NCBI RefSeq assembly: GCF_964188315.1
Contig: NC_135661.1
Location: 77,376,001 to 77,440,000, forward strand
DNA length: 64,000 nt
Reading direction: 5' to 3'
Origin: Podarcis muralis
Taxonomy: Eukaryota
In this document: positions 1 to 33,548 of the stretch, one piece after another
How the letters are laid out: every line of letters begins with the position of its first letter
Numbering within the stretch: position 1 is the stretch's first letter
Notes under the pieces: generated by a model
Seen by the model: only the letters and a program-made list of their open reading frames with translations
Told to the model about the DNA's origin: nothing
Database searches by the model: none
Program-made: the position numbers and the translations under genes

Positions 1-975
1 CTTTTTAATACCTATATGAAACCGCTAGGAGAGATCATCAGGGGGTTGTGCTGACTGTTCATCAGTATGCGGATGATACCCAGCTCTACCTCTTTTTCAA
101 ATCAAAACAAGTGAAGGCAGTGAATGTCATGTGTGAATGTATGGAGGCGGTTGGAGGGTGGATGGCATATAACAGATTGAGGTTGAATCCTGACAAGGCA
201 GAAGTACTGTTTCTGGGGGATAGGGGGCAGGCTGGTGTGGAGAACTCCCTGCTTCTGAATGGGGTAACTATGCCCCTGAAGAACTATGTGCGCAGCCTGG
301 GAGTCATTTCAGACTCACAGCTGTCCATGGAGGCGCAGGTTAATTCTGTGTCCAGGGCAGCTGTCTACCAGCTCCATCTGGTATGCAGGCTGAGATCCTA
401 CCTGCCCCAGACTGTCTTGCCAGAGTGGTGCATGCTCTAGTTCTCTCCTGCTTGGACTACTGCAATGTGCTCTATGTGGGGCTACCTTTGAAGGTGACCT
501 GGAAACTACAACTAACCCAGAATGTGGCAGCTAGCCTGGTGACTGGGAGTGGCCAATGAGACCACATAACACTGGGCCTGAAAGACCTACATTGGCTTCC
601 AGTATGTTTCCAAGCACATTTCAAAGTGTTGGTGCTGACCTTTAAAGCACTAAACCACTTTCAGCCCAGTATACCTGAAGGAATGTCTCCACCCCCATCA
701 TCCAGCCAGGACACTGAGGTCCAGCACTGAGGGCCTTCTGGCGGTTCCCTCACTGCAAGAGGTGAGGTTACAGGGAACCAGGCAGAGGGCCTTCTCAGTA
801 GTGGTGCCTGCCTTGTGGAATGCCCTTCCACCAGATATCAAGGAAATAAAGAACTATCTGACTTTTGGAAGACATCGGAAAGGAGTCCTGTTTAGGGAAG
901 TTTTTGATTTTTGTTGTTTTACCGTGTTTTAAATATTTTGTTGATAGCCATCCAGAGTGGCTAGGGAAACCCAGC
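1..975 (+). mobile_element. L2-clade LINE, 5'-truncated and degraded (RT C-terminal region plus 3' tail)
   Basis: ORF 48-440 contains HQYADDTQLY (YADD RT motif) and LRLNPDKAEVL. The 3' tail (gggaagttttt...ccagagtggctagggaaacccagc) recurs at 13840-14297, 27665-27955 and 37188-37692. Confidence 0.85.
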
Positions 976-1190
976 NNNNNNNNNNNNNNNNNNNNNNNNN
1001 NNNNNNNNNNNNNNNNNNNNNNNNNNNNNNNNNNNNNNNNNNNNNNNNNNNNNNNNNNNNNNNNNNNNNNNNNNNNNNNNNNNNNNNNNNNNNNNNNNNN
1101 NNNNNNNNNNNNNNNNNNNNNNNNNNNNNNNNNNNNNNNNNNNNNNNNNNNNNNNNNNNNNNNNNNNNNNNNNNNNNNNNNNNNNNNNNA
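976..1190. other. Assembly gap (215 N)
   Basis: Run of N inside the L2 tail; the overlapping X-rich ORFs are artefacts. Confidence 0.99.
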
Positions 1191-1702
1191 ATATTGTTAT
1201 TATTATTAACAAGTCATGTCCCCCAGTCTCTCAGTGCATTTTTTACATTTTTTTAAAAAACAAAAACGTAAGGTGGTCATAGTTGCAGGATTGCACTGGA
1301 AGATTTCCAGTGCGCCATCAGAAACCTAGTTTTGCATGAAGAAATGGGGGTTGGAGGTTAATAACTGTGGGGTAAGGAAAGGAAGCTTGGGGGGTTAATG
1401 TAGAGGGAATGATAATGAGATTGGTGAATGGTGTCAGCAGGAAGAAAGATGTTTGTGTGTTTCTATGCTAGCCTAACCCACTTATAGTACTGCAAAAACT
1501 TTAGAGCAAAGCAAACTGGAAAAGGTAACATACAGATCTTCACCCATCCCACTAACCACCCCACTTCCTTCTCCTCCTCCTCCACCTCCTCTTCTTCTTC
1601 TTCTTTAAAAAAAAATATATATTTTATTAAAGATTTTCTACTTCTGATTTTGAGTTTAGGTTTTCTAACTCTTTTTAAATGAGATTCCTCTCTTTTTATA
1701 TA

Positions 1703-1933
1703 CAGTGGTACCTCAGGTTACGGACACTTCAGGTTACAGACGCTTCAGGTTACAGGCTCCACTAACCCAGAAATAGTACCTCGGGTTAAGAACTTTGTTT
1801 CAGGTTGAGAACAGAAATCACGCGGCTGTGGCGGGAGGCCCCATTAGCTAAAGTGGTGCTTCAGGTTAAGAACATTTTCAGGTTAAGAATGGACCTCCAG
1901 AACAAATTAAGTTCTTAACCTGAGGTACCACTG
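1703..1933. mobile_element. Tc1/mariner-type MITE (CAGTGGTACC TIR, TA TSD)
   Basis: TA|CAGTGGTACCTC...GAGGTACCACTG|TA. The paralogous site near 15935 is empty. Confidence 0.85.
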
Positions 1934-2863
1934 TATACAATAATTTCAGACATAGCTAATGAGTTGTTTTATTTTGTATTCCCCCCCCCCCGGAATGGTT
2001 GAATCACTTTTAAAATCAATACAAAGAAAGGTATATTATGAAAAAACACGAGGACCTCTTGTAGCACCCCATCCAGCCATGCAAGGAGCCTCTGGTTGGG
2101 ACCTTCACTGCAGTAAATTATTGCTGATAACCATCCGGAAGAAACAAACAAAACCATTTTTGGACTCAATATTCTTTATTGGGCCTGCAATCTTTCATTC
2201 ACGAAACAGTCTGGAACTTCAAAAACACACTTTGGAGGAGGTGGGGGGAAGTATTGTGGTACTCAAATCAGGATGAGGAAGAAATTCAATTTTGTCTGCA
2301 TGTTAATGAGAAACTAACTCATTTGCACTTTCCAGACCAATATGCAACCTAAAACTCAGCCTTCAAATTTCACGTTTCTCATAATTTTGCAATGTAGTTC
2401 ATAAACCAAACAGTGTATACAAAAATGTATTTATGTGAGGAAAGTGCATATATTAGTGATAATAGCATTCTGTGTCTATTGTTCAAACTGCATGTAAACG
2501 TTGTGTTTATTAGGGTAAATCCATGCTAAAATGTGAGCAGATTTGCAATAGTTTTTTTAAGAAGCTAATTGCCGTAGAAATGTCGAGAACTGAATTTAAG
2601 GTTTAAAAAGTGAGAAACTTAATAGCACTGTAATTTGACAGATCTGTCCATTTCAGTGCCAAAATGCTCATGGCATGAATCCTTCGAGGTGGCTGGCATT
2701 GAGAGAGCGATCAGGAGAGAAACTTCATAAAGAGAAGGCTGGAGATACTAGGTAGCAGGAGGAGGAAGAAGCTCTTCCCCAAGATATGGTTGTCACTCGA
2801 TTTTGTTGTTGTTTTAGTTGTGGCTGGTCTCTGAGTTGTGGCTGATGCAGAACTTCTGGCTGG

Positions 2864-5800
2864 TTAAGCTTTTGCAGCTGGTGCTGGCTTTTCGGCATCG
2901 ACACATGATATTTTATTTATTTTGTAGGGGATTCCTGCAATTGTCACTTCATAGTTCTCTACACCGCACATATTGCTTGTTCCACAACCATGCAGGACGA
3001 ATTTCTTGGCACCTGCAGGTAAATATGGGGATCATCAGCAGATGTCAGTGGTGGCTGCTCTAGTACAGCAAATGGGGCACGACCCCTTCCATTTCAGTCT
3101 GCCCTCACCCAGCCCCCATCATCCTGCCTTCTGACTCACAACCAGGCCAAGCCTGACCCTCCTCCTCCCTTCCTAATTCCCTTCAGGGTTACCAGTTGTT
3201 CCTGTTGCACTGATGCAACTCATTTGACCATCTGTGCATGAGACCTTTCCACCTTTGCATTTCTCCTCCGTCTGAGCATAACATCCAGTTGGACAAGTGT
3301 ACCCATTCTCAGTCCAAGTAGTTGGGAGAACTAGGAAGCAAAGAAGAAAGAAGCAAATGGTCATATATGGAAAGTTTTTACATTAGAATCTCCGAAGAGC
3401 CCCGCTGGATCATTGACAGGCCTGCTTCACACAGACACAGCAGCCGCAGCCTTCCTGATGCATTCACACAACCACCCACTGAGTCCTCCCCACTCCCAGG
3501 TCTTTGTTAGCATATTCTTTGTCAGAATAAAAGAATGAGGTCTAGAGTCACGGGTTTGACACCTTTCCTGTCTTGTGTTAGGATGAAAGGTGTGGAGGGA
3601 CTAAAACTTCCTCTACTCCACCCTGTTCCTGCCAAGTTTCAAAAGCTAATTGAGAATGTTTTCATCATTCTGAAACCAAGGGCCCCACCAGACTGGTGTT
3701 TTATTTCGGGGTCATTTGTTCACCATGTTCTTCAAACTATAACACTGCATTAGTGATGGATTTCTCCTGGTTTCATTTGTCCTGTGGTGTTTCCTACTGC
3801 ATTATTGCTGACGGGAGGGGCTGTGGAACAACAGAAGTGGGACGAAAATAAACCAGGACATTTGTGGCATGAAAGGTGATGGGTTTTCAGGAGGAAGTAA
3901 TGGGATGTGCACTGATTGTAAATGAAGCAGTATGACCACCCCAATACCTCTGCACACGCAAACAGTATTGAGAGTGGAATTGTGTGTGACTGGCTCCATA
4001 GCCTCATGGGCACAAATCACCTTGAATGCACTATAAAAAGGACTTCGGGAGGGGTCCAGGTTTGCAATTCTGATATCAGAGATGGGCAGGTGATGACTTA
4101 CTTCCCCAATCTAAGTTTTTGTTGCACCCATCTTCAGTACAGCAAGCGGAGCTGGAGCGTAAATGTTTCCCGTCTCCTATGGTGATGGTAAAAGCATTGG
4201 CACAAGAATCATTTTTCCCACATGTATAGAATGTTGTAGTAAACTTGACCCCTGTATACCAGAAAAGGAAAAAGACAAACAACATGTCAGGAGATCCCAT
4301 TCCCCAGAATCTCTGCCGAACTCTGTGGTCTCCATTGTGCTTGCCCTTCCATCTGTTCCAAGTTCTCCCAAGGGAATATGGCTTGCTAGAGTACAAGCAC
4401 CTCCATCTTGCTGAATTAAGCTTTGGAAGTTCCAGATCAATTGTGAAGAACCTCAGTTCTGTGGATCAAAAGCAACCTCTTTCTGTTTCTGACCGTTCAG
4501 AAACGGCCCAATCCACACCCCTTACCAACTTCATTTTACATCCACCTTGAGTGTGTTTCCCTGGCTGGTATACATATCTGACAATGATTCTTGTCAGGTG
4601 GCTTCCAACATATATAAAAACATAATAAACATAATAAAACATTTAAAAACTTCCCTATGCAGGGCGGTCTTCAGATGTCTTCTAAAGGTTACATGGTTGC
4701 TTATCTCCTTGGTTCGGGGGTGGGATAACTCCATACCCTCCAACATTTATCCAGTGAAAATAGGGGCATCCTAAGGAAATGCAGGACATTCCAGGATCAA
4801 ATCAGAGACCAGGTCAGCTTCTGTAAATCTGGGACTGTCCCTCGAAAATAGGGAAATTTGGAGGGTCTGCTACCAGCTTCCAACTCCTTCTTAGTCTCAG
4901 AGTTGTCCCTTGCAGAACTCAGCTGGGAGCAGAAGGATGGGGACGAAAGTAGAACGATTTGGCTCTGCCCATCATTGGCCTTCTTCCATACCAGTCCTAA
5001 TGGGCACCAGACTCCATTGGATAGATTGTGGCACAGCGTGGAGCATGCCACCAGGCAAGGCCAACATCTTCCTTACCAAACATTGTGCTCTCATCCTTGA
5101 TGACCACGCAGGCATCCAAACCACTGACACAGTCTGAAACCACAGAACCTTCAGTTCCTTGTTGGCACTTAAGGGCTGGAAGAAGAAAGTAAAGGCTGGT
5201 CAAAATTATATCAGAGTGAAGACATAACAAATATAATGGGAGAAGTTCTGCTGTGGCTCTGTGATTGGAGGAGCCTTCCCCCCCCCCCTTTAGAGGACAA
5301 TTAGGACAATGGGAGAGGTTAAATACCTCAGAAAAAATAAGGGGGCAGATGACGGAGATAAATATATATACAAAATTAAATATTTGGGAATATATTTGAT
5401 AGACAAGAGTATTAAGATATTTAAAGACAATTATGAGAAAATTTGGAAAAGAAATAAAAAGGAATTTAGAAATTTGGGGAAGAATGAATTTGTCATTGTT
5501 AGGAAGAATTTCAGTGACTGAGATGAATGTATTGCCAAAAAATGTTGTTTTTATTTCAATCAATCCCGGTGAGAAGCGATTCGAGCTGCTTCAAAGAATG
5601 GCAAAAAGATATTTCAAAATTTATATGGAAAGGGAAGAAACCAAGAATAAAATATAAACTACGTACTAACAGACATCAAAGATAGAGGAGGTTTCTCTCT
5701 ACCGGATTTAAGATTATATTATGAAGCATCTTGCATCTGCTGGATCCAGGATTGGATAAAAGTAAAAGATACAGATTTGCTAGATTTAGAAGGCCATGAC

Positions 5801-8014
5801 AATAGACTTGGCTGGCATGCGTATATATGGTACCATAAGGCAAAATTACATAAATGATTTTGGAATCATATAATAAGAAAATCAGTTTTTTAGGTCTGGG
5901 AGAAATATAAAGATCTATCAGAACAAAAAACAAAACAAAACACCATGGTGGTTCTCCACGCTAGAAGCAATAGCTCTTAAAAAAATGAATCTGAGGACAA
6001 ATTGGTCCACATATAGATAATCAGTTAAAACTAAAGGAGTTTGTAAAAGTCAGAGAAATGGTTACAGATTGGTTACAATATTTTCAATTAAATGAAACCT
6101 TTAAAAATGATAAAAAGAAAGGATTTAGCTATGAAGTGTCAAGATTTCAGAGAGAGATAATAGACCATACCAAATTACTGTCAAAAATGTATAATATGCT
6201 CTTGGAATGGAATACCAAAGAGGAACAGGTCAAATCTGTCATGATAAAATGGGCAAAAGATGTGGCACACAATATACAAATGATAGACTGGGAAAAGCTC
6301 TGGAAGAGAGATCTGAAATTTATGGCATGTACCTCATTGAAAGAAAACCATATGAAAATGATGTATCGGTGGTATCTAACCCCGGTTGAATTAGCAAAGA
6401 TTTATTGAACAAGATTAAATATGTGTTGGAAATGTAAAGAAGTAGAAGGTACCTTTTATCATACGTGGTGGAAATGGAAGGTTGGATAGTTCTCACCCAG
6501 GGTCACCCACAAAAGTCTCACAATCAGAACAGCGGCCATCAATCTAGTCTCTCACTATAGACTTGCTTTTCATGGGCAAGCCCAAGGTCAATAGTAGGTC
6601 TTAGTTGTGGGATTCCCATAGGCATCTGGCTGAGAATAGGATTGTGGACTATATGGGCTACTGGCCTGATCCTGCAGGCTCTTCCTGTGTTTTTCTACCA
6701 AATACAGAGGTAAAGGGACCCCTGACTGTTAGGTCCAGTCGTGGACGACTCTGAGGTTGCGAGGCTCATCTCACTTTATTGGCTGAGGGAGCCGGCGTAC
6801 AGCTTTCGGGTCATGTGGCCAGCATGACTAAGCTGCTTCTGGCGAACCAGAGCAGCGCACGAAAATGCCGTTTATCTTCCCACTGAAGCGGTACCTATTT
6901 ATCTACTTGCACTTCATGCTTTCGAACTGCTAGGTTGGCAGGAGCAGGGGCCGAGCAACGGGAGCTCACCCTGTCATGGGGATTCGAACTGCTGACCTTC
7001 TGATCGGCAAGCCCTAGGCTCTGTGGTTTAACCCACAGCCCCCCTTGCTATGAGGTGTATAAAAAGCTGAAGCAACAACAGACAAAGAAAACATTACAAA
7101 AATACAGAGTTACATATAAAAACATTACATTAATAGAACATTACTAATATATATATAAATCAATAGCAATTCCTTTCAATCTCTTTTTTATATACATATA
7201 AATTTTATTAGTTTTTTAACATATCATTTTCAACAGTAATTAAACATACTTTTACATCTTATTCAATTTTTTTGACTTCCATCAGTCCTGTCTGGAAATT
7301 TTCCTTCTTAGTATGCATTTCAAATTTTCCCTATTACATTTCAAACTCATAACCAATATCTCTATCTTTTTCTGCTTTGTAACACTTTGTATATTTCTCC
7401 TTACAAAACGTCTTGTAGTCCTACTAGCTTAATTTGTTGATTACAGTTGCTCTTCAAAGAATTTAACAATTCCTTTCATTCTCAGCCTCTCGGTTCTCAC
7501 CCAGGGTCCAAACACACTCTCAGCAAACCCATAAAAGTCTCGCAATCAGAACAGCAGCCATTGATCTAGTCTCTCACTATAGACTTGCTTTTCATGGGCA
7601 AGCCCAAGGTCAATGGTACTTCCTTAGGTTTCCCACAGCTGTGTCCCATTGAGCTGCCCTCTCCACACCCAGTTCAAGGTACAGCAGGTGTGCTAAGTCT
7701 CCCAGGGGGTCCAAAGGATGGGGAAAGTTTCTCCCTCCACTCACAGCTCTTTCTTCACCCTCTGTCCCCTCCTCGTTTTCAAGCTGGCATACAGATCCTC
7801 CTGTGGTAAGAAAGTTCTCTGCAAAGTTTTTAACCCTCTGAGATTAGCATCAAATGATGGCACAGTTGGTATGTGATTCCAAAGTACTAGCCTTTCACTT
7901 TGTCCTTAATAGCATCATAGGAAAAGGGATGTCATCAATGATAAATAACTTACGTGGATCCACAGAGGCAACTAAGAGTGGCGAAAGAAGGCAGAGCACA
8001 AGGAGAGGCACCAT
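2864..8014 (-). CDS. Gene A: PLA2-inhibitor-gamma/PINLYP-like protein with two LU domains, 198 aa, predicted secreted. Exons 7954-8014, 5077-5175, 4102-4251, 3193-3330, 2864-3012
   Basis: All introns are GT-AG and phase 1. Product: MVPLLVLCLLSPLLVASVDP-PLKCQQGTEGSVVSDCVSGLDACVVIKDESTMF-GVKFTTTFYTCGKNDSCANAFTITIGDGKHLRSSSACCTEDGCNKNLDWG-ILPTTWTENGYTCPTGCYAQTEEKCKGGKVSCTDGQMSCISATGTT-GAKKFVLHGCGTSNMCGVENYEVTIAGIPYKINKISCVDAEKPAPAAKA*. It has a signal peptide, a CCxxDGCN LU terminus and an NGxxCP second domain. The frame continues past TAA (2864-2866) to TGA at 2711-2713. AATAAA at 2506-2511. Confidence 0.85.
5330..6480 (+). mobile_element. L1 LINE ORF2 fragment (late RT to C-terminal zinc-knuckle region), frameshifted, in intron 1 of gene A
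   Basis: Broken frames read YLGIYL, LSLLGRISV..MNVLPK, GGFSLPDLRLYYEA and CWKCKEVEGTFYHTWW, typical of L1 ORF2. Confidence 0.8.
6708..7039 (-). mobile_element. Sauria SINE
   Basis: The reverse complement reads gctgtgggttaaaccacagagcctagggcttgccgatcagaaggtc...ggttcgaatcccc (tRNA-derived head) and ends ggtccctttacct. Confidence 0.9.
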
Positions 8015-8973
8015 GGTGTCGTAAGGTAGGGCTAAGGTCCTTGCTGGGCTTGAGTGCTTCTTGTGCACAGATGTATGTGCAAAGGACGTTTTATAGATGG
8101 GTCTCCACTAACATCTTTTAGGGAGTTGCTCCAATGTACCACAGTAAAAGGAGTGCTGTGTAGTGTAAATACCCATAAAGAAAATGGGTGGAGATGCCTC
8201 TCTTATTGTGCCAGGACTTCCTGGAATGAACGGTGGATTCTGACGACAAATTTGGCAAAACTGATGCCAACTTGAGGCATTTCTAGCTTTAGGAATGTTT
8301 GGCATGTACCTTACATACTATTACTTATTCCATTTATTCCCCCGCTCCTCTATGGATCCTCAAGCAGGCAGGCAGGGAGGAGCACTCTTTTATTCTAACA
8401 ACAACCCTGTGAGGTAGGTTCGGCTGAGAGATAGTGTGTAGCCCAAGGAGTTTCATGGATGAGTGGAGATCTGGCTCCAGGTCTTCCTCATCCTGCCATA
8501 TTATCATTTATTGCCTGCTGTGTTCTGAGATTAGTGCAGCCAGCTCCAGAAAACAGGGAAAGTTCAGAGAGGAGCCTCAAAATTCAAGGATGGTGAGCCT
8601 GTAGCCCTCTGGATGTTGATATGGATGCAGTTTCCATCAACCCTAACCAATAGCCATGCTGGCTGCAGTCCAGCAACACCTGGAAGGTGACAAATTCGCT
8701 ACCCCAGCTCAAGTTCAAAATGTTTGAGGAACACTTCTCTCTCAAGCCTCATCTAGTGAGGATCCTATCCAGCAGCAACATAGTTTTTAATAGAAGGACT
8801 ATATGGTAGAAGGTGTCTCATCCTCTTGAGAGTGAAGGCGCTCTTAGCTCTGCTCCTGAAGATTGTTGTTGGTGTGTGTGTGAGTGTGTCAGAGGGGCCA
8901 AATTGCTCTGAAGATTGGGGACGGGTGATGACACACGCATGATGTCAGGATACCGGGAGGAATCAGGGAGTGG

Positions 8974-16822: not shown

Positions 16823-17257
16823 TTTAGCATATATACAAATGCATTATATTAGGGGGAAATGCTAGCAAAACCCTATATTAGCCAAACTGCAAGTACAAAT
16901 TGTGTTTATTAGGAGAAATGCATGCTAAAATGTGGATGGATTTTCAATAGTTGTTTTTTTAATGCAGATTTATGTGAGGGGAGTGCATATATTCATGATA
17001 ATAACATTTATAAAATCATAAAAATTATAAAAAAGGCAATGCTGGTAAAACTGCATGTACAAATTGTGTTAACCAGGAGACATTCAAGCTAAAACATGGA
17101 CAGATTTTCAATAGCTTTATTTTTTAAAAAAGCAGATTGCTGTAGAAATGTGGAGAACTGAATTTAATGTTCTTTTAAAAAATGAGAAACCTAAGAGCAC
17201 TGGAATGTGACAGATTTGTCCATTCCTTTGCCTAGCTGAATGGCGTGGAGAGAGAGT

Positions 17258-19134
17258 TTAGGAGAGGAACTTCATGAAGAGAATGCTGGAGATACTGGGT
17301 AGAAGGAGGAGGAAGGAATTCTTCCCCAAGATATGGTGAGTGCAAGCCTTTGATGTTGTTTTGGTACTTGTGGCTGGTTTTTGAGTTACGCCTGATTTTT
17401 GAGTTGTAGCTGATGCAGGAGTTGGAGGTTTTGCAGTAGTTGGGGGAGTGTCACACGATATTGCATCCATTTTGTAGGGGATTCCTGCAATTTTCAATTC
17501 AAAGTCCTTTACACCGCACATATTGCTTGTTCCGCAACCCAGCAGGACGAACTTCCTGGCACCTGCAGGTAGACATGTTGATCAACATGTGAATTAGTGA
17601 AGCCTGCTCTAGTAGAACAAATGGGGCATGGCCCCTTCAACATCAGTTTGCCCTCAGCCACCCCTCACCTGCCAGCCATCAGCCCCACAACCAGTCTTGA
17701 CCACCAGCTTCCTCCTCCTGAGTCTCAGTGTTGCCCCTTGTAGAATGGAGCAGGGAAGAGGATGGGGACCAAACCAGAGTCAGTTTACTCTGCTTGTCAG
17801 GGGCTCCTCCCATGCCTATTGGCAATGATCCTATACCAGAGGCGCTGGCTTGGGCCTAACATGGCGTGGGCCCAGTGTCGCACCACACAGACGATGTCAC
17901 AGGCCTAGGACACCTCGCACGTGTCCCACGCCTATGACATCATACATGAAATGCGCATCACACCTGCGACACCAGGAGGTGGTTGAGTGCCACGCAGCTT
18001 CAATGGCTGCAGTTCTACTTCTCTCATGCTTGGGAGGAGCCACTAATGCTGCATCATGCTCGGCGCTCAGAGGATAAAGATGTCTTTATATTGAGCATGC
18101 GAAATAGGTTTTTTTTCCTGCTCCACCCATCACTGTCATCTAACCTCTAAGAAGGGAATTTATTTAGTTATTGAATTTATATCCTACCCTCCCTATAAAA
18201 AGAGCCTGGGCAGTGAGCATAGGCATAACTTATTTTTATTTTTATTGATGCAGTTGTTTTTTTTAAAAAAATCGCCTTCTGTCTGAAAAAGGGACCCCAC
18301 CTTTACCCCTTGTAACTCAAGGTGGCATATTTGGTTCTCACAACCATCACTGCCCTATTTTATGTTTACAATGTGGCTTGCATGGACTCCAACTGAGCCT
18401 CTTTCCTATACCAGGCCTCAGCTACAGCTCCATTCCCAGTATGCAGTTCCAATAACAAGCATATTACTTACTCTTCCATACCAAGTGTTTCTCTGTGTGA
18501 CTGCATCAAGGTAAGCCTCCTCTCCTAACAAGTATTCAGAAGCTGAAAGCCTCAAAGCTGTGTGCTAACTCTGCATATCAGTCAATAGTATTCAGAATCA
18601 TCTGGTAAAACACAGCCCTCTTGGCTAATAGGCATTGGCAGCCTTATCCTTCATAAATATTTCTAATACATTTTTGAAGGCCATCCAGTGTGGTGGCCAT
18701 GATCACTACATGATCATGTACCTACGGGACCGCCTCTCCTGGTATGCCCAACGGAGGACCATAAGGTCCATAAACAGCAACACCCTAGAGGTCCCAGGCC
18801 CTAAGGAAGTTAGATTAGCCTCAACCAGAGCCAGGGCCTTCTCAACACTGGCTCCGGCCTGGTGGAACGCTCTATGTCATGAGACCAGGGCTCTGCGGGA
18901 TCTGATTTCTTTCCGCAGGGCCTGTAAGACAGAGTTGTTCCACCTGGCCTTTGGCTTGGAATCAATTTGATTCCCTCCCCCTCTTTCTTTTTCCTTTCTC
19001 CTCCGGTGAAGAGGCTGCATCCTAATGTTTTAATGTTGTATTTTAATCTTGTTTTTTAAATTGTATTTTAATCAACATGTTTTTATTATTGGTTGTTAGC
19101 CGCCCTAAGCCCGGCCTTGGCTGGGGAGGGTGGG

Positions 19135-19189
<55 letters not shown>

Positions 19190-21265
19190 ATCTCATGGGA
19201 CCAATTCCCATCATTTAACTATGCACTGGGCAAAGAAATATTTTCTTTTGGTCATCAAGAATGTTCCAACATTTAGCTTAATTGAATGGTCCCAAGTTCT
19301 ACTCAAATGAGAAGGATTCAATCACACACTCATGACACTTTAGCGCTCCAAAGAACGATGCACACATGCCAATCCCACCATGCTCTGGCACAGCACCTGT
19401 TCATTTCAATGATGCTTGCACCAGAGAACATCCTGGAAGATGGTTCCCCAAGAGTCAGGGCTGCAAGTCTCTTGTTCTGCCACCTGAGTCATCTCATCTT
19501 GCCTGATGGTTGGTCCACCTCTGGATCGTCCAGAGGCAGCATTCCCCTCCCACCTGCTCCCCCACCCCACGGAATCCCTCCTCCTCCCTTCCTAATTCCC
19601 TTCAGGGTTACCAGAGCTTCCTGTTGCATTGATGCAACTGTTTTGAGCATCTCTGCATGAGACTGGTCTATTCGCGCAATCATTCACCGTCTGAGCATAA
19701 CATCCAATTGGACAAGTGAGCCCATTCTCAGTCCAAGTAGTTGGAAGAGCTAGGAAGCAAAGAAGAAAGCAGCAAATTGTCATATATGGAAAGTTTTTAC
19801 ATAAGAATCTCCGAAGAGCCCTGCTGGATCATTGACAGGCCTGCTTCACACAGACACAGCAGCCGCAGCCTTCCTGATGCATTCACACAACCACCCACTG
19901 AGTCCTCCCCACTCCCAGGTCTTGGTTAGCATATTCTTTGTCAGAATGAAAGAATGAGGTCTAGAGACACAGGTTTGACACCTTTCCTGTCTTGTGTTAG
20001 GATGAAAGGTGTGGAGGGACTAAAACTTCCTCCACTCCACGCTGTTCCTGCCAAGTTTCAAAAGCAAATTGTGAATGTTTTCATCATTCTAAAAACCAAG
20101 GGCCCCTCCAGACTGGTGTTTTATTGCGGGTTCATTTGTGCAACGTGTTCTTCAAACTATAACACTGCATTAGGATGGATTTCTCCTGGTTTCATTTGTC
20201 CTGTGGTGTTTCCTACTGCATTATTGCTGACTGGAGGGGCTGTGGAGTAACAGAAGTGGGACGAAAATAAACCAGGACATTTGTGGCATGAAAGGTGATG
20301 GGCTTTCAGCAGGAAGTAATGGGATGTGCACTGATTGGAAATGAAGCAGTATGACCAGCCCAATACCTCTGCACATGCAAACAGTATTGAGAGTGGAATT
20401 GTGTGTGACTGGCCCAATAGCACCATGGGCACAAATCACCCTGAACGCACTATAAAAAGGACTTCTGATATCAGAGAGGGGCAGGTGATGACTTACCTCC
20501 CCACTCTAAGTCTTTGTTGCACCCATCTTCAGCACAGCAAGCAGAGCTGTGGTGCAAATATCTCCCGTCTCCTACGGTGATGGCAAAAGCATTGGCGCAA
20601 GAATTTCTTTTTCCACAATCATAGAATTTTGTATTGAAGCTGACACCTACTTACCGGAAGAGAAAAATACAAATGGTCAGAAGAGCCCATTCCCCAGAAT
20701 CCTTCACTCTCTGCCTAACTCTATTGTCTCTGCTCTGCCTTCCCCTTCCATCCTTTCCAAGTTCTCCCAAGGGAATATGGCTTGCTGGAGTACAAGCACC
20801 TCCATCTTGCTGAAGTAAGCTTTGGAAGTTCCAGATCAATGGTGAAGAACCTCAGGACTGCGGACCAAAGGCAACCTCTTTCTGTATCTGACCCTTCGGA
20901 ACCGGCCCAATCTACACCCCTTACCAACTTCGTTTTACATCCTCCTTGAGTGTCTTTGCCTGGCTGGTATTTGTCATCGAAATCTGACAATGATTCTTGT
21001 TTTCCTTGACTGGATGGAAGCTAGAGAGAGAGATGGGTGTTTGTGGGCAGAACCTAGCCTATCAAGCTAAAATGTACATTTATTGCTTTGCCCACTTTTG
21101 CTTATGACCCTGCCCAGTCTGGTGTGTGGCCCTCAAAACAGAATGTGGCCCTCAGCTTAAAAGGGAATTCTGCTCTGGAACACTGCCAGAAATCTCAGGA
21201 GGTGGTTAGTGGTAGAGGAGAACGTCCTGGCTGGTCCATTAAGTGAATGGGGTACTTCCTGTTCT

Positions 21266-21309
<44 letters not shown>

Positions 21310-24300
21310 TATTATCATTATTATTATTTTTATACTATTTATACCCTACCCATCTGACTGGGTTGCCCCAGCCACTCTGGGTGGCTTCCAACATATATAA
21401 AAACACAAATAAACATTTAAAAACTTCCCTATCTAGGGCTGTCTTCAGATGTTTTCTAAAGGTTGCATGGTTACTTATTTCCTTGGTTCGGGGGTCGGAT
21501 AACTCCATACCCTCCAACATTTATCCAATGAAAATAGGGGCATACTAGGGAAATGCAGGACATTCCAGGATCAAATCAGAAACCGGGGCAGCTTCTGTAA
21601 ATCCTGCACTGTCCCTGGAAAATAGGGAAACTTGGAGGGTCTGCTACCAGCTTCCAACTCCTTCTTAGTCTCAGAATTGTCCCTTGCAGAACTCAGCTGG
21701 GAGCAGAAGGATGGGGACGAAAGTAGAATGATTTGGCTCTGCCCATCATTGGCCTTCTTCCATACCAGTCCTAATGGGCACCAGACTCCATTGGATAGAT
21801 TGTGGCACAGCGTGGAGCATGCCACCAGGCAAGGCCAACATCTTCCTTACCAAACATTGTGCTCTCGTCCTTGATGACCACGCAGGCATCCAAACCACTG
21901 CCACAGTCTGAAACCACAGAACCTTCAGTTCCTTGTTGACACTTAAGGGCTGGAAGAAGAAAGTAAAGGCTGAACAAAATTATATCAGAGTGAAGACATA
22001 ACAAATATAATGGGAGAAGTTCTGCTGTGGCTCTATGATGGGAGGAGCCCCCCCCCCCACTTGAGAGGACAATTAGGACAATGGGGGAGGTTAAATACCT
22101 CAGAAAAAATAAGGGGGCAGATGACGGAGATAAATATACATACAAAAGTTAAATATTTGGGAATATAGTTGATAGACAAGAGTATTAACATATTTAAAGA
22201 CAATTATGAGAAAATTTGGAAAAGAAATAAAAAGGAATTTAGAAATTTGGGGAAGAACTAGGAAGCAAAGAAGAAAAAGCATATTGTCATCATATGGAAA
22301 TGAATGAATTGCTATGCCCCACAAATAACCCAGAGATGCATTTTAAATGAAAGGACACATTCTACTCATGTAAAAACACAATAATTCCCGGACTGTCTGC
22401 GGGTCAGATTTAGAAGGCGATTGGGCCGGTTCCAGCCCAGGCCTTAGTTTGCCTACCCATGATCTGGATGGTACAAGGTCACATTCCATTCCTTCCACTG
22501 TTTACAGACTAGTGTACGAGCCGCAACCATAAATAACTCACAGAGTACATATCCAAACTCTGCCATTAAAATTCCGGTCTGGAGTTCTTCCTTGGCACAC
22601 AGTTAAAACCATAAGAAAGCATAAGAATGCACAAAGCACCTTGTCCTCTCCCTTTCTTTCTTGGCCATTGTAAGGATTCTCAAGCTTCTAAGAAAATATT
22701 CAGCTACCTTCAAAAAGCCAAGCCCAGCCCTTTTGGCAGCTGATTGATTGTAGCCTATTAGCATATGTCAGTCCAGGAGCACCTCTTGATTCATGCCAAT
22801 TGTCCAAATTATGGAGGAACCAACCGCAACTCATGCCAGAGTTGGAGGCTTGTCCATGGCAAGGACACTCCCAGGTTGCACCCGATCTGCCTTTCAAGTT
22901 GGCAGACACGGGCTTGAGCAGCACAGTGGGGTGCAGTGAGCTCCCCCGATCCCACTGGGGACCATTGCCAATAAATCCTGGCTTTCCCCTGCCTGAATGG
23001 CAGCACGGAGCTACTGGCATTGAGTTCGTGATGTAGCCAGAAACCTACATGGATTTATCTAATCCTGCTTTCGTTCCATCTAACGCAGTACACACCACCC
23101 AACCTTGTGGCAGTGAGTTTTAGAAGGTGGCTATGGATTGTTGTGCAAGAGGAAGCACTTCTTTCGTCAGGCCTAAACTGATTGCTAATTTTCTTAATTG
23201 GGTGGCTCAAGTCAGAAATGAGTCTGTGTGGCCCTCCAGATGTTGTTGGGACTACAATTCCTATCATCTCTGCCAATGTCATATCCTGGTCATTATTAGA
23301 GATCCTTTCCAAAAATTCCACTCATTCAGTGTTCTCCCTGGAATCTGGACTTCCAAATTACTTGTTCTTGCTCCCAATATGAAAAAGATCTGTTGGGAAT
23401 TTTCCATTGTTCCATTTTTTTTAAAGAGTATTTCTTTATATTATATGGATTATAAACTACTAAAGATTATAGCAGCATACAGCCATGAAACTTTAACAAT
23501 AAACAGTTCAACAGTTCTCAGAAATGAAATCAGATATGCATCCTTCAGGAACGTCAGCAAAAAATAGAATAGAATAAAACAAAGGTTTTAGCTCGACAAA
23601 ATGTGTACGATGTCGGAAAGTGTCTAACTATCCTTCATGCACTGCCTCCAGTACATGCAGCATCACGGGGGGGGGGGGGACACCCCATAGATGGTTGCAG
23701 TGAATGGGCAGCTATATAGACAATACTAGCCTATTCCTTGGAAGAAAGCCTGCCAATCAAACTAGTAGCTGTGGTGCCTGTGGTGGGTTGGAAGCATGAC
23801 GTTATCCTTAGATGGCACTGAGACACGGTGATGGGAAGGTGGGGATTATACAGATGCCTCGGCAGGAGCATGGAATGGGGAACTGCATGGCCCCAATCTC
23901 ATGGTCACTCCAGCCCAGACCTGTTCAGGTAAGCATCTTCACATGCTGCTACTGTGAACTTAAGATGCACAGCTGATATTTGTGTGCAGTATAGAGGTGG
24001 TGTACTGCAAGCACCCATTTTCTCTGCTGTCAAAAGTGGCATAATTTCTGCCAGTCCCAGTTCCACCTGCAGCATGTTGAGTTTGTTGAGAAAGCCAAGA
24101 GAAGGACAACTGGGAGCAGGAAACTATTGAGGCAATAGCATTAGGCTGGTTAGATGTCAGGCACCATAGCTACCCATCCAAAATATGCATCTTTGGTGGT
24201 AGCCCTACTCAAAGTAGACCCACTGAAGTCAGTGGACATAACTTAGGTTCAGTTGTTGTGATAGATATACTCTGAGCCGGACTTAGCTGAATAAAACTCA

Positions 24301-25011
24301 CTGCATATTTGAGCCACTGCCATTAAAATTTACAGCGAGCTTAACAGTTGTTCTAACAGCAGTGGTTTGATCTCCAGACAGATTACTACCAGTCTCCTGG
24401 TTGCCAAATCCGCCCACTGAAGTGCTAGTCTTGAAGTCCAAACACAGACACTAGCCCTTGATTTCCCTTGATCAGGCAGGGGAAAGTCACTAGTCACTCG
24501 ATGGCCCTTGTGGTCTCTTCCAACTCTATGATTACTGGTGGATTGATTATTGAATTTCTATACCACTTACTATATTAAAAATATATCTAAGTGGTGTACA
24601 AAAAGCTGAGGCAAAAACAGACAAACAAAATATTACAAAAACACACATTCATTTTCCTTCTGACACATCCTTCCCCTCAGCCTCCGGGTTCTCACCCAGG
24701 TCCAAACAAACTCTCAGCAAACCCATAAAAGTCCCACAACAAGAAGAATTTATGGGAACAGCAGATATCACCCTAGTTTCTCACTCTAGAGCTGCTTTTT
24801 ATGGGCAGGCCCAAGAAGGACAGTTTTTAACCCTCCTAGATTAGCATCAAATGATGGCTCAGTTGATATGTCATTCCAAAGTCCTGGCCTTCCATTTTGT
24901 CCCTAACAGCATAGTAGGAGAATGGATGTGATCAATGATAAATAACTTACGTGGATCCTGAGAGGCAACTAAGAGTGGCGAAAGAAGGCAGAGAACAAGG
25001 AGAGGCTCCAT
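17258..25011 (-). CDS. Gene B: PLA2-inhibitor-gamma/PINLYP-like protein with two LU domains, 250 aa, Ser/Thr/Pro stalk and predicted GPI signal. Exons 24951-25011, 21851-21949, 20497-20646, 19612-19749, 17258-17562
   Basis: GT-AG phase-1 introns; exons 1-4 are the same size as in gene A (61/99/150/138). Product: MEPLLVLCLLSPLLVASQDP-PLKCQQGTEGSVVSDCGSGLDAC...ACCAEDGCNKDLEWG-ALPTTWTENGLTCPIGCYAQTVNDCANRPVSCRDAQNSCINATGSS-GARKFVLLGCGTSNMCG...ISCDTPPTTAKPPTPASATTQKSGVTQKPATSTKTTSKACTHHILGKNSFLLLLPSISSILFMKFLS*. AATAAA at 17116-17121. Confidence 0.88.
18715..19190 (+). mobile_element. L2 3' fragment (second subfamily) in intron 4 of gene B
   Basis: Reads RTIRS..NTLEVPGPKEVRLASTRARAFSTLAPAWWNAL..FRRACKTELFHLAF; (ATT)n tail. 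Confidence 0.8.
22100..22257 (+). mobile_element. Truncated L1 fragment, paralogous to about 5330-5485
   Basis: Near-identical to the start of the gene A intron-1 L1; ends abruptly at a foreign splice-acceptor sequence. Confidence 0.75.
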
Positions 25012-27376: not shown

Positions 27377-29632
27377 TTACACAGGTGAGGATGCAAACAC
27401 AGAGAAACTCAAGAAAGCAATAACGTTTACAAAGGGGGACCCAGTTAGCTGGATGGCTGCAGAAGGGCCATAATCCTCAGTTTGCCCATCAGTGCAAACT
27501 GCATACTCAGTCACAATGTAGAGTTTTCCTGCATAGGGCACAAGGTCATTGACATCCAAGGAACAAGCTGAATCAGTTGCACAGCCTTTGACGGAGAAGT
27601 TTTGTTCCGGTAAACCTGCAGAGAGAGAAGAGCAAAGACTCAAAATGAGAGGAAGAGCAGGTCCCCTTTCGTACCTCATTGCGAGAAGTGAGGCTACAGG
27701 GAACCAGACAGAGGGCCTTCTCGGTAGTGGCGCCCGCCCTGTGGAACGCCCTCCCATCAGATGTCAAAGAGATAAATAATTACCTGACATTCAGAAGACA
27801 TCTTAAGGCAGCCCTGTTCAGGGAAGTTTTTAATATGTAACGCTGTACTGTTTTTAACACTGATTGGGAGCCGCCCAGAGTGGCTGGGGAAACTCAGCCA
27901 GATGGGCGGGGTATAAATAATAAATAATAATAATTATTATTATATTATTATTATTATACCTAGCTTGTTTTCCCCTGCATATGATGGTTTGTGTCAGAGT
28001 CTAATTGCAGCGGGGGCTTGACCCAGCTGAATCTGGTGTCCGCAGAGCCTCACAGCTCACAGGTTCCCCCAACAGCATGCTATAAAGGAGGGAAGAAGTC
28101 AGGGAGAAGGCAGCAGCCAGAGGTGAAGCATAGGTTTGGAAAGTAGATAGACTTAGAAAGCCAAGTGTGGGAGAAAGAGCAGGCATGGACCTGGAGCTCT
28201 TTCTGGGTCACCACTCAGCAGGGATGGCCCCTCTTATTTCACCACCTGTGGCAAAATGGGAAAACGTTGCCCCTGCCTCCCCTCCAAAATCTTTCTTACT
28301 GGGGTCGTGCAGCTGCAGCGGTGGGAAGACGGCAGTTTGTCCAACCTTTAAACAGCTCACCTGGGCCACTACCACCTGTGTTGCTTGCTTCCTTCGTCAC
28401 TTCCTGCCTGCCATTCTGTCATCATGCTGCCTATGAGCGGCCGTGCAAATTACAGCATGACGACAGCCTTACTTTTATATGTATATAGGAAGAAAAGGAA
28501 GATGGGACAGGAAGCAAAAATGATGATAAAGAAGTGAAAATAAAAGGAAGGTGGGATCTAAAACTTAAAAGAAAAGAATAATAGTCACTCTGAGGGAACT
28601 TCTGAGATTTCTGGGGGGGAAATGGCATGCACCCACCCCTGGGAGCATTGTCTGTGGTGAAAAGTACTAGGTTGGGCAATGTTTTGGGAAGCCTATTCCC
28701 TGTCTACACTTGCCTCCCATCCTTAATTTTGATTTGGGCATTCTTTCTGGAGAATCCCAGCCTTACCGTTTGGTAGTAGGAGACAAAGAGGGACATGGGG
28801 TGATTGTTTTTTTTAAATACACGCACGCAGAGTGGTGGTCAAAAGTGTGCCCAGTGATCATCAAGTCAATTTGAGGGTGTGTAGTGAGGTCACATTCACT
28901 CCTTACTTTACTTTTAACACATGCATATGCCACTTTAAGAGTTGTACCTTCCCCCAAAGAATCCTGGGGATGGTAGTTTGTTAAGCACATTGACCCCATA
29001 GAGCTACAGTGTCCAGCACTCTTAACAAACTACAGTTGCAAGGACTCATTGCGACTATCAAAGTGGTACAAGAGTTCTTGAAATACAGGGTGTGGCTTTG
29101 ACCTAAGTCTCACAGAGTCCTGTTGCCTTTTTCACAAGCTAAGGGCTGTGGATAAAAGATTCCTCCCTGTCCCCACTATCACCGACTTCCCAGGTTCATC
29201 CTACTTTCCACCCACAACCCAGGTTGGAAAAGGGGAAATTAAGGGTAAGGCAGAAGCCATCTTTAAAGGCTTTCAACAAAGCTCCTTGGAAAGGTCCCAG
29301 TAACAGCAGGGTGTGTGTGTGCGTGTGTGTGAAGAAATACCAGCGTATAGCCCAACAAGGGAAATGCACTTTTCTTCGATTCCGGTGCATTCGACGCGCT
29401 CGTGGGCCTGGCAAGGGCCCCGGTTAAAACTCTCACACCCTGGGCAAGTCAACCCGTTTTTGGTAGAACTCGCAGGAGTCACTGGAAAACAATCAGAGGA
29501 AGATCTCACGTGAGCGAGGGCAGCGAGAGGTAGCTCTGATGAAACGGACTCAGCCCATGGAGCTAAGCAAACACGGTAAGCCCCAAACTTATGCACATTT
29601 AACTTGTGCAATTTCAGCTTTACAAGCCTTGC

Positions 29633-29668
<36 letters not shown>

Positions 29669-32600
29669 AATAGGGGGAGGAAAAAGAGACTCTGGCAATC
29701 CCACCTGCCATTGAACTCAATGTGTCCTGACCATACACAATTTTGGCTTTAGCTATGATCCCCAGAAACTAAAACCCACATAAATTGTAGTCTGTGCTTT
29801 GGTAGTCTCAAGGCTAGATTACTGCAGCATACTCTATATGGGGCTGTCCTTGGATCTGGCCTGGAAGCTTCAGCTAGGGAAGAACGTTGCAGGTGGAGCG
29901 GTGATGAGAACAGATCACCGTCAACACATGACACTCCATGGGCCAGGTTGCCCCCAAGAATGAGCCAGATCCACTAGTCTATCTAGTTCAGGATTGTCTA
30001 CTGATTGGCAGAAGCTCTCTGGGGTTTTGGGAGTGCCTGGAGATGCCTGAGAAGGACACACTGCCAGGGGGCATGAAAAGGGGGCTCAAACTGCAGCAGA
30101 CCAGTAGTGTCTGCAGATGTAGGAAGCTGCCTCACAGAGTCAGACCATTGCACCATCTAGCTTAGCACTGACTGCACTGACTGCCAGAGGTGCTCCAGGG
30201 TTCCAGCTTGGGCTGGATGATAGATTGTCCCAAACTGGTTTGAAGCCCGCATTGTGATATTGGTTTCATGATGTATCACGAATCATGATTTGTGTGCGTT
30301 ATGCAAAAATCTCAATGTGGGGAAAACACAGAAGCCAGGTAATGCCTCTACATAGCTCCATCTTTATTTTAGACGTCAGGATATATTGGTATGTTGCTAT
30401 GTTTAGCTGGTGATATATCGTGATGTTGAAGACCAGATATCGCACAGTCCTAATTCCAGGCAGGGGACATTCCCAAGTCCTTCCTGGAGATGCCAGGAGT
30501 TGAACCAGGGACCTTCTGCAAGGAAAGTGCTCTACCACTGAACTAAGGACCTTTCCATGCACTGAGGTCTTCTGCTGAGACCCTTCTTCAAAAGCCTCCT
30601 TCACCAGACAAATGCTCTTCAGTGGCATGGGAGATGGTCTTCTCAGCAGAGGCACCAGTTGCAGAACACCCACCCCAACAAGATTTGCATACCACCTTCC
30701 TTGCTATCTTTTTAGCATCAGGCAAATACAGATTTTTTATTTACCCGGGCATTTTAACCAGTTGCAAATCCTAGCCTGCTTTCAAGGGGTCTGTTCGCTG
30801 CTTGATTTTAGTGGGGTGGTGCTGTGGTTCTTGAATTGTGGCATTAATTTTTGTTGTTACACAGCCCTGAAATCCAAAAAAAGGATGGAAGGTGGTACAT
30901 GACTCCTTTCTTTCCTGTGATGTGAGGTTTGCCTTGTATTGGAATAATAAAGGGCAGGAGTCAGCAAACCCATATTTATTGATAGGAGAAGTATAATAAA
31001 ATAAGGTATTATTTGGGAGTGCAGATCAGGAAGTTTAACTAGGAGAACAGAACACATTGTAGCTTCATCAATGGCAGGCTTCTTCAACCTCGGCCTTCCA
31101 GATGTTTTGAGACTACAATTCCCATCATCCCTGACCACTGGTCCTGCTAGCCAGGGATCATGGGAGTTGTAGGCCAAAAACATCTGGAGGGCCGAGGTTG
31201 AGGAAGCCTGATCAATGGCATATTGGGTACAAACAGGAAACTGTGCATCTTTCATTGTGCAACTATTTAGATATATTTATATAATCTTTGGAAATATATT
31301 AAAGTTAAATTCACAGATCAATTTTTGCTTTTAAATAATAATATTTCCTTGCATTTATAATATAATAAATTCCCTTCTTTGTCCAGATCTGGATGGTGGC
31401 ACATGGGGGGGGGGGGACGTTTTCTGAGAACTCCCTTAGGTCACTGGTTCAAGGTCACTCATTGCAGATTTGCATCCCCATTACGGTTGCTTTATGAACC
31501 TGCCAACTCGAACCTCATGGACCACCATTGTCCTCAAGAGGGAAGCTACCAAAGGCGCACACACACACACACACACACACTGCTTTGAAACACTCTGCAA
31601 GCTCAATCAATACTCACTACTTAGAACCAGTTCTTCGTTGCATCCAGCAGTTCCACAACAGGCTATGTTGCTCCGGATTTGCCTCTCCGTGGATGTGCTC
31701 AGCGTGAAGGCTCCTGGTTTGCAGGCACTGCGGTTGATGCAGCTTTTGTATATCCCAGTGGGGCTGACACCTCTGCCTGGAGAAAAAGAGGATGTGACTA
31801 TTCCTCCTGAGCATGGGAGAAATGTCGTGTCAATTGGATCAAAAGCCTATCAGCAGGGACTGCCTTCTCTGATCGGACCAATGGCACGTGTAGCCCAGCA
31901 TCCTGCTCTCACGGGGCAAAACCTATGGGAAGCCTGAAAGCAGGCTCTGAGCATAAGAGCACCCTCCCTTCCTGAGGATTCCAGCAACTAGAATTCAGGA
32001 GCACGCCGCCTCCGACAGAGGAGGTAGAACATACCCATCAGAGTCAGCAACTGCTGCAAGGCTTCTCCTTCACGAATTTGTTTGGAAGATTCAGGGCAGA
32101 TAAAAGAAACCTTCACACAGCACATGGTTAAAACTATGGAACTCACACCCGCAGAAGGTAATGATGGCCCCCAAATGGGGTGGTTTTAAAAGAGGATTAG
32201 GCAAATTCATGGCCACTAGCCATAATGGCTATGCTCTGGCTCCACAATCGGAGGCAGCAACGCTTCTTCTTCATCATCATCTTTTCATTGGTTTTTACTG
32301 AAGAATTTTTTTGTGCCACAAAACCAATAGACAAACACATATAGCACCTCCACTTGCCATTCAGAGAGTCTTTTTGGCATCAGACACTATTGCCACAGAC
32401 ACTGTGCCGTTGGAGGAAAAGAGAGGGGAGTGGGGGGAGGGAGAGAGATGGGGGGATAATAATGATCTTTCGTTCTATTGCATAGTGTCTGTGCAGGGTT
32501 TTTGTGTCAGCATCACACGGGTAGGTCCTTTATTTATTTATAAATTTGTTCATTTTTATTGTCATTGCAAGAGATTATGGGGTCCAGAGCTTGGATGGTT

Positions 32601-33548
32601 GTGTCTGGTTGGTTGCAGTGTGGTTTCTTTGTATGTATGTGTGCCGGGCAGGGGGGTTGTTGGGTCAGATTAGCCATATCGCTGCATATGCTGTTGTGGG
32701 GCACAGGTCATTGCCTTGTTGTGCTGTATATGTGATACAGGGGAGCCACACCGGGGTGAAGGGGCCCTCCTTCGCTTGTCCCCATGCTCGTGTCGGTTAG
32801 CTTTCCTAGTAGGGTGCAATGCTTCTAAATACCAATTGCAGGAAACCAAAGGAGCAAGAGAGTGCTCTTGAGCTTTTTTCTGGTTTCCCATAGGAATCTG
32901 GACTCGATGGGCCACTGGCCTGATCCAGCAGGCTCTTCTTATGGCTTTAAGTCACCCAACCAACGCTGAGGCTGAGCAGGGATTTGAACTCATTCCTCCC
33001 TAGTGGAGAAGGACCAGAAGCCTACGGCATTTGCCAACAATTGCACCCACCTAACGTGTTGAATGTCGATAGGGTAACACACACTAGCTCTTTATGCGGG
33101 CAATGAATCATCTTGCATGTGGCATCTCCAAGGTCGCACTTTGAACACGATAAATTCCTAGCTTCTGGAAGCAGAAAGAAAGGGCGAGTGATTGCTACAG
33201 AAGGAACTGTAGGGCTCCAACCTGGGGGCTTTGTCGTGGGTCAGCTGGGTGGTGGTCCTGGGTTCACGGAAGTCTGGAGGACCCACTTTGGTGGCAAGAG
33301 GGGGAGTGGAAACAGAGAGCCATATGCACATTACGCCTCTGTAGCTGAGACGGGTCAACTGCAGAGGAAAGCCTGATAGCAAAAAGAGGGGTACAGCTGG
33401 GGCCCCGTTTATGGTCTTTTTGCCCAAGAAGCTCCCCATCCCGAAGCCTGGATCTGCCCATGTAAATAAGGTTTAATGAAGACCACTCACCATTAACAGG
33501 CAGCAGAAGAATGCAACAAGTAAGGCAGTGGAAAAGGATTGTTTTCAT
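27377..33548 (-). CDS. Gene C: PINLYP/PLA2-inhibitor-gamma-like protein with two LU domains, 236 aa, canonical 10-Cys domain 1 and predicted GPI signal. Exons 33491-33548, 33051-33164, 31618-31776, 29341-29481, 27377-27615
   Basis: GT-AG phase-1 introns. Product: MKTILFHCLTCCILLLPVN-EARNLSCSKCDLGDATCKMIHCPHKELVCVTLSTFNTL-GRGVSPTGIYKSCINRSACKPGAFTLSTSTERQIRSNIACCGTAGCNEELVLS-MTPASSTKNGLTCPGCESFNRGPCQAHERVECTGIEEKCISLVGLYA-GLPEQNFSVKGCATDSACSL...VCTDGQTEDYGPSAAIQLTGSPFVNVIAFLSFSVFASSPV*. AATAAA at 27184-27189; possible non-coding 5' exon with a GTGAGT donor at 34293-34298. Confidence 0.9.
27665..27955 (+). mobile_element. L2 3' fragment in intron 4 of gene C
   Basis: Same tail as 1-975; ends in taaataataat/attatt repeats. 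Confidence 0.8.
31075..31210. mobile_element. hAT-type MITE
   Basis: TIR CAGGCTTC.TCAACC; perfect 8-bp TSD ATCAATGG at 31067-31074 and 31211-31218. Confidence 0.85.

Follow-up and report, generated by a model that had tools for sequence, protein, structure and literature searches.

Can the step that turns a membrane-anchored protein of the Ly6/uPAR superfamily into a secreted one be read directly from a genome? The question is raised by a stretch of 64,000 nucleotides from Podarcis muralis (RefSeq assembly GCF_964188315.1, contig NC_135661.1, positions 77,376,001 to 77,440,000; hereafter the window), which contains part of a tandem cluster of genes for phospholipase A2 (PLA2) inhibitor-like proteins. 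One member, gene A, ends at a TAA codon that stands between its two LU domains and a sequence resembling the stalk and glycosylphosphatidylinositol (GPI) signal of its paralog, gene B. We consider it probable that gene A is a functional five-exon gene for a predicted secreted two-LU protein, with an old TAA and a fossil anchor signal in its 3' untranslated region (UTR). Loss of the anchor signal is an accepted route to secreted Ly6/uPAR effectors (SLURPs, three-finger toxins, serum PLA2 inhibitors), the causal mutation usually being inferred. Here the stop codon and the fossil anchor signal can both be read, in six gene copies from three species and beside intact paralogs that are predicted to be anchored.

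A TAA codon separates the LU domains of gene A from a relic anchor signal

Gene A lies on the minus strand and consists of five coding exons, all with canonical splice sites. Its features, including RNA evidence that is described further below, are as follows (a slash marks an exon boundary).

7954-8014, minus strand: exon 1, coding part; signal peptide MVPLLVLCLLSPLLVASVDP plus 1 nt; donor C/gtaagt; RNA depth peak in bin 7932-8125
5077-5175, minus strand: exon 2; first half of LU domain 1 (LKCQQGTEGSVVSDCVSGLDACVVIKDESTMF); linked to exon 3 by an RNA contig (joint 4249->5076)
4102-4251, minus strand: exon 3; rest of LU domain 1, including the CC...CN motif; 100% identical to the older reference protein P0008
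3193-3330, minus strand: exon 4; first half of LU domain 2; the RNA loose end at 3330 runs on into the end of exon 3
2867-3012, minus strand: exon 5 up to the stop; rest of LU domain 2, followed by 11 further residues, DAEKPAPAAKA; Pfam PLA2_inh E 0.011
2864-2866, minus strand: TAA stop in the context GCT TAA C; ends the protein ahead of stalk and tail
2711-2863, minus strand: relic of a Ser/Thr-rich stalk and hydrophobic GPI-type signal, now 3' UTR; in frame, open, 50 codons
2708-2710, minus strand: TGA, by translation and comparison with B the ancestral stop of the anchored form
2506-2511, minus strand: AATAAA polyadenylation-signal match in the 3' UTR; the RNA contig extends beyond it, and the true 3' end is not fixed by it

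Exons 2 and 3 encode LU domain 1 and exons 4 and 5 encode LU domain 2, which gives a single chain with two LU domains in tandem. The last exon, exon 5, spans 2708-3012 (acceptor ctgcag/GT), and its coding part ends in ...ISCVDAEKPAPAAKA followed by the TAA. Translated on the minus strand, window positions 2708-3013 read GAKKFVLHGCGTSNMCGVENYEVTIAGIPYKINKISCVDAEKPAPAAKA, a stop, PARSSASATTQRPATTKTTTKSSDNHILGKSFFLLLLPSISSLLFMKFLS and a second stop. The TAA sits 11 residues beyond the last cysteine of LU domain 2 and 146 nt past the last exon junction. The 50 codons behind it (PARSSASATTQRPATTKTTTKSSDNHILGKSFFLLLLPSISSLLFMKFLS) are all open, are closed by the TGA at 2708-2710, and specify a peptide (containing, for example, HILGKSFFLLLL) that is homologous to the stalk and tail of paralog B. 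In the last exon of B (17255-17563), sense codons occupy the site of A's stop and are followed by a Ser/Thr/Pro stalk and then by ...HILGKNSFLLLLPSISSILFMKFLS and a stop.

The N-terminus of gene A, MVPLLVLCLLSPLLVAS, resembles a signal peptide, and its open reading frame (ORF) closes at the TAA before the hydrophobic tail is reached. A predicted GPI-type signal thus lies within the reading frame of B, whereas in A it lies behind the stop. A stop codon in the last exon should not trigger nonsense-mediated decay, and the gene A mRNA should therefore not be a target of this pathway. The sequence-only reading that preceded this analysis had placed the stop just after both LU domains and in the last exon, with the frame downstream still open and encoding a B-like stalk and tail, and was right on each of these points. 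Its wider claim, that one nonsense codon brought about a recent switch from an anchored to a soluble protein, stands insofar as the codon cuts off the stalk and the GPI-type signal; the word "recent" does not stand, as set out below.

The stop codon is real, and gene A is transcribed and spliced

An assembly error at 2864-2866 would have undone this reading. We compared the window with DNA contigs from two individuals sequenced in two studies: the contig of run X4 covers 2500-2979 with 0 other letters, and that of run X1 covers 2500-2996 with 1 other letter (at a place not given; the listing has no difference at 2864-2866). The older P. muralis reference protein XP_028598309.1 (P0008, 198 aa) stops at the same residue, ...PAPAAKA, and the short gene A product is thus already annotated. 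The TAA is real, as the X4 contig and the protein of the older reference individual agree. P0008 is an allele of gene A, with a last exon 94% identical to that of the window and approximately 10 of 198 residues differing overall; it stood in for the full-length gene A protein in our profile search and structure model.

Transcription is evident from run X19, in which bins containing the five exons of gene A have a word depth of 7x10^3-7x10^4, versus 0-260 for unique intron bins. The X19 RNA contigs reach their highest depth in the bin holding the stop, where no difference is listed; one contig skips intron 2 (joint 4249->5076), and loose ends fit the exon 2/3 and exon 3/4 junctions exactly. At another loose end the reading is ATGSSG, as in exon 4 of the P0008 allele, so that the X19 individual carries this allele, and paralog B is also present in this run (loose end VSFNTK). 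With its exons intact and its RNA contigs spliced, gene A is neither untranscribed nor otherwise disabled, the other outcome that would have told against the original reading. An internal mini-intron by which the stop might be skipped was also considered and rejected: the gap between the candidate donor and acceptor is <40 nt, which is too short for an intron, and among the joints listed no RNA joint falls within 2700-3012.

In P. muralis, Podarcis raffonei and Podarcis lilfordi all five exons of gene A are open and have canonical splice sites, and exon 1 is conserved in both of the latter species as well as in B (24951-25011). Between species the ratio of nonsynonymous to synonymous substitution rates (dN/dS) in the coding sequence is 0.37, 0.51 and 0.75, with 20-27 substitutions per pair only. 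Because these ratios are not very low, one might ask whether gene A, having lost its anchor, is a pseudogene in decay whose RNA is noise; the annotation of P. raffonei A as a truncated 129-aa product (P0018) and a P. lilfordi gene model that skips A's last exon (P0011) would fit such a view. We think decay quite unlikely: no exon, frame or splice site is broken in any of the three species, which come from different major clades that split ~10-17 million years ago, the RNA is spliced and its exon depth is on a 10^4-fold scale, and a sister gene of the same architecture, gene S, is annotated in all three species. Automatic annotation that fuses or truncates genes in a tandem array accounts for the odd models. 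Nor, given intact exons and splice sites and spliced RNA at high depth, is gene A a processed or unitary pseudogene.

Amino-acid polymorphism in gene A is also unusually high. At window position 4131 a T>A change replaces Asp by Val (D40V) within the CCTEDGCN motif of LU domain 1, an amino-acid polymorphism at a conserved motif; both other individuals have it in their DNA contigs, and it makes up about one third of the RNA depth. In exon 2 (5077-5175) the window allele reads SVVSDCVSGLDAC, as B does; SEVSDCASGLNAC stands there in P0008 and in the orthologs from P. raffonei and P. lilfordi. This difference is likely a B-to-A conversion tract that segregates in P. muralis.

The stop predates the duplication that produced genes A and S

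Gene A of P. raffonei (L005), whose last exon is 95% identical, and gene A of P. lilfordi (L002) both have the TAA at the homologous column, as does gene S of P. muralis, the downstream neighbor of A. We read the latter on L004 (assembly GCA_964188315.1, OZ076960.1), which is 100% identical to window 1-5206. In P. lilfordi S a 17-nt deletion makes an earlier TAA, and P. raffonei S has an earlier TAA two codons upstream plus a frameshift; both keep the original TAA in the relic's own frame. In a maximum-likelihood tree of last exons, the six TAA-bearing exons (A and S of the three species) form one clade versus B, with support 100/100. Common to A and S of three species and falling in one clade, the stop predates the A/S duplication, and a single origin before that event is the simplest reading. 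P. muralis, P. raffonei and P. lilfordi fall in different major Podarcis clades. These clades split 16.7-9.8 million years ago (PMC8114931), and the TAA is probably older than that split. A recent switch, as had first been supposed, is therefore not supported.

The relic drifts neutrally

Behind the stop, the relics of P. muralis A and P. raffonei A differ by 4 nonsynonymous and 0 synonymous changes, and those of P. lilfordi A and P. muralis S by 3 and 0. Between A-type and S-type relics there are ~21 nonsynonymous and 5 synonymous changes (dN/dS 1.2-1.5); S-type copies compared among themselves, including P. lilfordi A, give dN/dS 0.47-0.63 from 5-18 substitutions per pair. The substitutions put Pro and His within the hydrophobic core. 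Three indels are multiples of three and lie in an (ACA)n tract; as such a tract slips by three, in-frame indels are to be expected. The relic is in frame and open in A of all three species and in P. muralis S, with hydrophobicity still like that of B's tail. In P. lilfordi S and P. raffonei S it is out of frame and behind further stops, yet equally open. In simulations of neutral substitution on the estimated tree, 31-45% of runs left all six relics stop-free (P 0.31-0.45), which rules out openness as a sign of selection, since it is expected by chance. The relic thus drifts neutrally.

These data also bear on whether the TAA could have arisen lately in gene A of P. muralis alone. The open relic would then follow from the youth of the stop, and the last 24 codons, with dN/dS 0.15 between A and B, look like a tail that was constrained until recently. 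However, the restriction to gene A is already refuted by the single clade of TAA-bearing exons, and the low ratio between A and B can be put down to constraint along the B branch and, prior to the stop, along the branch leading to it. A relic dN/dS of 1 or more within the TAA clade, outside the comparisons among S-type copies, and the openness expected by chance argue in the same direction, making a late, A-specific origin very improbable.

An in-frame, open relic with B-like hydrophobicity could instead mean that low-level readthrough yields a minor GPI-anchored form besides the secreted one, as the sequence-only reading had proposed. In vertebrates the leaky type of stop is UGA-CUAG; that of gene A is UAA followed by C, which is no known leaky context. 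The peptide that readthrough would add has accumulated mostly nonsynonymous changes, including the Pro and His in its hydrophobic core, and its frame has been lost in two S orthologs, where the relic is just as open. The indels in steps of three follow from the repeat tract. Gene A thus shows neither the leaky context nor the constrained downstream peptide of programmed readthrough, and we regard a dual-form gene as highly unlikely.

A model for the origin of the short proteins

Taken together, the data favor a model that begins with an anchored two-LU ancestor in a tandem PINLYP/PLI-gamma-like Ly6/uPAR cluster. This ancestor would have had a signal peptide, a Ser/Thr-rich stalk and a C-terminal hydrophobic GPI signal, the last two as still found in B, in the further paralog D and in Anolis PINLYP. 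A single TAA, 11 residues past the last cysteine of LU domain 2, would have arisen in the precursor of A and S, probably earlier than the split among the major Podarcis clades. The gene would then have duplicated into A and S, both giving short proteins of 198-208 aa whose secretion is predicted from an N-terminal signal peptide and the lack of an anchor signal. What had been stalk and tail would have become 3' UTR and drifted neutrally since. The mRNA, which should escape nonsense-mediated decay, reaches a very high level in at least one sample.

Several points weigh against this model. Secretion of the gene A product is predicted, not observed. The coding dN/dS values come from few substitutions. 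The label of run X19 as RNA is a guess only, although its exon-peaked depth and spliced contig argue for RNA. A second RNA run, X23, has no reads on any gene A exon, which means only that expression is tissue-limited. The newer RefSeq annotation returned no protein identical to the window's own A allele. Finally, descent alone may not account for the spread of the TAA: conversion or introgression could have contributed, which weakens the dating. Introgression is documented in Podarcis (PMC8114931). The last exon of P. lilfordi A (L002:14251-14552) is near-identical to that of P. muralis S, not to that of P. muralis A, and groups with the former in the tree, which points to gene conversion between A and S. 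With this S-type exon in P. lilfordi A, and with introns of A and B that are 93-98% identical, conversion appears to be active in the cluster, and the dating of the TAA is weakened to that extent.

Family membership and fold of the gene A product

The gene A product belongs to the Ly6/uPAR (LU, three-finger) superfamily by Pfam profile, cysteine framework and model fold. P0008 matches Pfam PLA2_inh (PF02988) in two stretches with 34.8 bits versus a cut-off of 22, and has 8 Cys per domain. Taken singly, the half-domain exons gave only sub-threshold LU/PLA2_inh matches in Pfam (for exon 3, PLA2_inh E 0.0027) and nothing in a sequence search of the PDB, and a family-profile search of the PDB returned chance RNase matches only. 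The AlphaFold2 model of P0008 is all-beta, with a mean predicted local distance difference test score (pLDDT) of 74.3. Its best Foldseek matches are uPAR, C4.4A and TEX101 (probability 1.0) and CD177, with E 2e-5 to 2e-2. The nearest named relative outside Podarcis is Anolis PINLYP (P0019), which is 33% identical to the gene S product (P0009) and matches the family profile (A3) with E 1.8e-19. No snake protein, and thus no snake PLI-gamma, was among the matches of our sequence searches.

Comparison with known anchored and secreted relatives

Like snake serum PLI-gamma, a liver-made protein that binds and inhibits PLA2, gene A specifies two tandem LU domains, with a predicted signal peptide and no predicted GPI signal in the translated product, in a protein whose P0008 allele passes the PLA2_inh cut-off. 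In gene A the anchored ancestor can still be recognized from the relic behind the stop. The likeness to PINLYP extends beyond the Anolis protein, since a PINLYP-like gene, C, lies in the same array beside a gene for an IIGP-type GTPase; in contrast to Anolis PINLYP, which keeps a hydrophobic C-terminus, genes A, B, S and D are an expansion that we saw in Podarcis only. The structural matches uPAR, C4.4A (LYPD3), TEX101 and CD177 are multi-LU, GPI-anchored proteins, and C4.4A has two LU domains, a Ser/Thr/Pro-rich stalk and a GPI signal, as in paralog B. They share only 15-20% sequence identity with the gene A product, which, unlike them, is without stalk and anchor.

For three-finger toxins, an origin via a stop codon inserted before the membrane-anchoring region has been proposed (Koludarov et al. 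2023, PMC10421932). Gene A resembles that case as a Ly6/uPAR protein that would have passed from anchored to secreted, and the kind of stop proposed there is directly visible here. It differs in that the toxins come from single-domain LY6E-like genes in another cluster, whereas gene A is two-domain, is not a toxin, and has its relic anchor preserved. SLURP1 and SLURP2 are also Ly6/uPAR members without a GPI signal (PMC10421932). The gene A product shares this lack with them, but they are single-domain proteins from other loci. To our knowledge, no relic anchor has been reported for either.

We put forward tentatively, and with low probability, that the A and S genes are an independent lizard counterpart of snake serum PLI-gamma: abundant secreted two-LU proteins, solubilized by one nonsense mutation and diversifying fast. 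Signs of fast diversification are the identity of exons 3-4 between A and B (79-83%, versus 93-98% for the introns), an A-B dN/dS of ~2 in exon 4 and the ~10 allelic differences in 198 residues. If the idea is right, the A and S proteins might be, for example, circulating binders of viper-venom PLA2 in prey species, or a secreted signal, and the anchored paralogs would keep the ancestral cell-surface role. Our literature search found no paper that ties Podarcis to PLA2 inhibitors; neither the femoral-gland proteome of the sand lizard nor a paper on the association of proteins with lipids in femoral secretions of lizards mentions an LU or PLA2-inhibitor protein. The class of change described here is a known one and the event an old one; RefSeq already lists the short protein, and any PLA2-binding function is putative. 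Together, A and B form a clean natural pair, before and after the event, in which the effect of anchoring on a two-LU protein could be studied.

Paralog B and the rest of the cluster

Along the gene strand the cluster reads C, B, A, S, and then D and E outside the window; RefSeq names its members "PLA2 inhibitor ... -like". The intact paralog is placed as follows.

17255-25011, minus strand: tandem paralog B (P0007, XP_077788701.1, 275 aa); keeps stalk and hydrophobic tail
~24951-25011, 21851-21949, 20497-20646, 19612-19749 and 17255-17562, minus strand: exons of paralog B, the same five-exon structure as gene A

P0007, named "PLA2 inhibitor gamma subunit B-like" in the P. muralis annotation, is identical to gene B. 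GPI anchoring of B is a prediction from its tail; paralog D, like B and Anolis PINLYP, keeps a hydrophobic C-terminus. An exhaustive representative search with B's last exon gave 2 matches, one of them a P. lilfordi protein. On the P. lilfordi locus L001 we found paralogs D and E, at 70-80% identity, which are not orthologs; L003 ends ~0.9 kb short of gene A's last exon.

Comparison of A with B (window 3193-5500 versus 19612-22257) revealed introns 1-3 that are 93-98% identical, as alike as A and its orthologs, versus 79-83% for exon 3 and 81% for exon 4, where dN/dS is ~2. This pattern suggests intron conversion or a young duplication, plus diversifying selection on the LU loops.

Outside the window, paralog LOC114602260 (proteins P0005, P0016 and P0013) ends in HILEKSSL, inside the hydrophobic tail, in the new P. 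muralis annotation (P0005); the tail is whole in the older allele and in the ortholog from P. raffonei. Judging from these protein annotations, the case may represent another loss of an anchor signal, independent of the first and perhaps polymorphic.

Gene models across the array are uneven. P. raffonei A (L005:10001-15338) has five intact exons though annotated as the 129-aa product P0018, and among the P. lilfordi models (L002, L001) P0017 fuses C and B, P0011 fuses A and S while skipping A's last exon, and P0002 mixes D and E. Automatic gene models in this array are unreliable.

Gene C, the third LU gene of the window (28766-33554, minus strand), is PINLYP-like; its exon ORFs match PLA2_inh with E 2.4e-5, and its N-terminus forms part of P0017. 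Near it, at 44536-45786 on the minus strand, a single-exon ORF of 416 aa encodes an interferon-inducible GTPase (Pfam IIGP, E 1.3e-101). A GTPase near a PINLYP-like gene fits the mammalian PINLYP/PLAUR neighborhood. Farther along, a GC-rich stretch at 51288-55364 on the plus strand holds an open pol-type ORF of 1358 aa from a long terminal repeat retroelement (protease, reverse transcriptase, RNase H, integrase). A run of N stands at 976-1189. Very high-copy dispersed repeats occupy 6700-7150 and 4440-4830, with DNA word depth up to 5.8x10^5. The former has a tRNA-like end and is probably a short interspersed element, and the two repeats are the sole parts of this stretch covered by RNA run X23.

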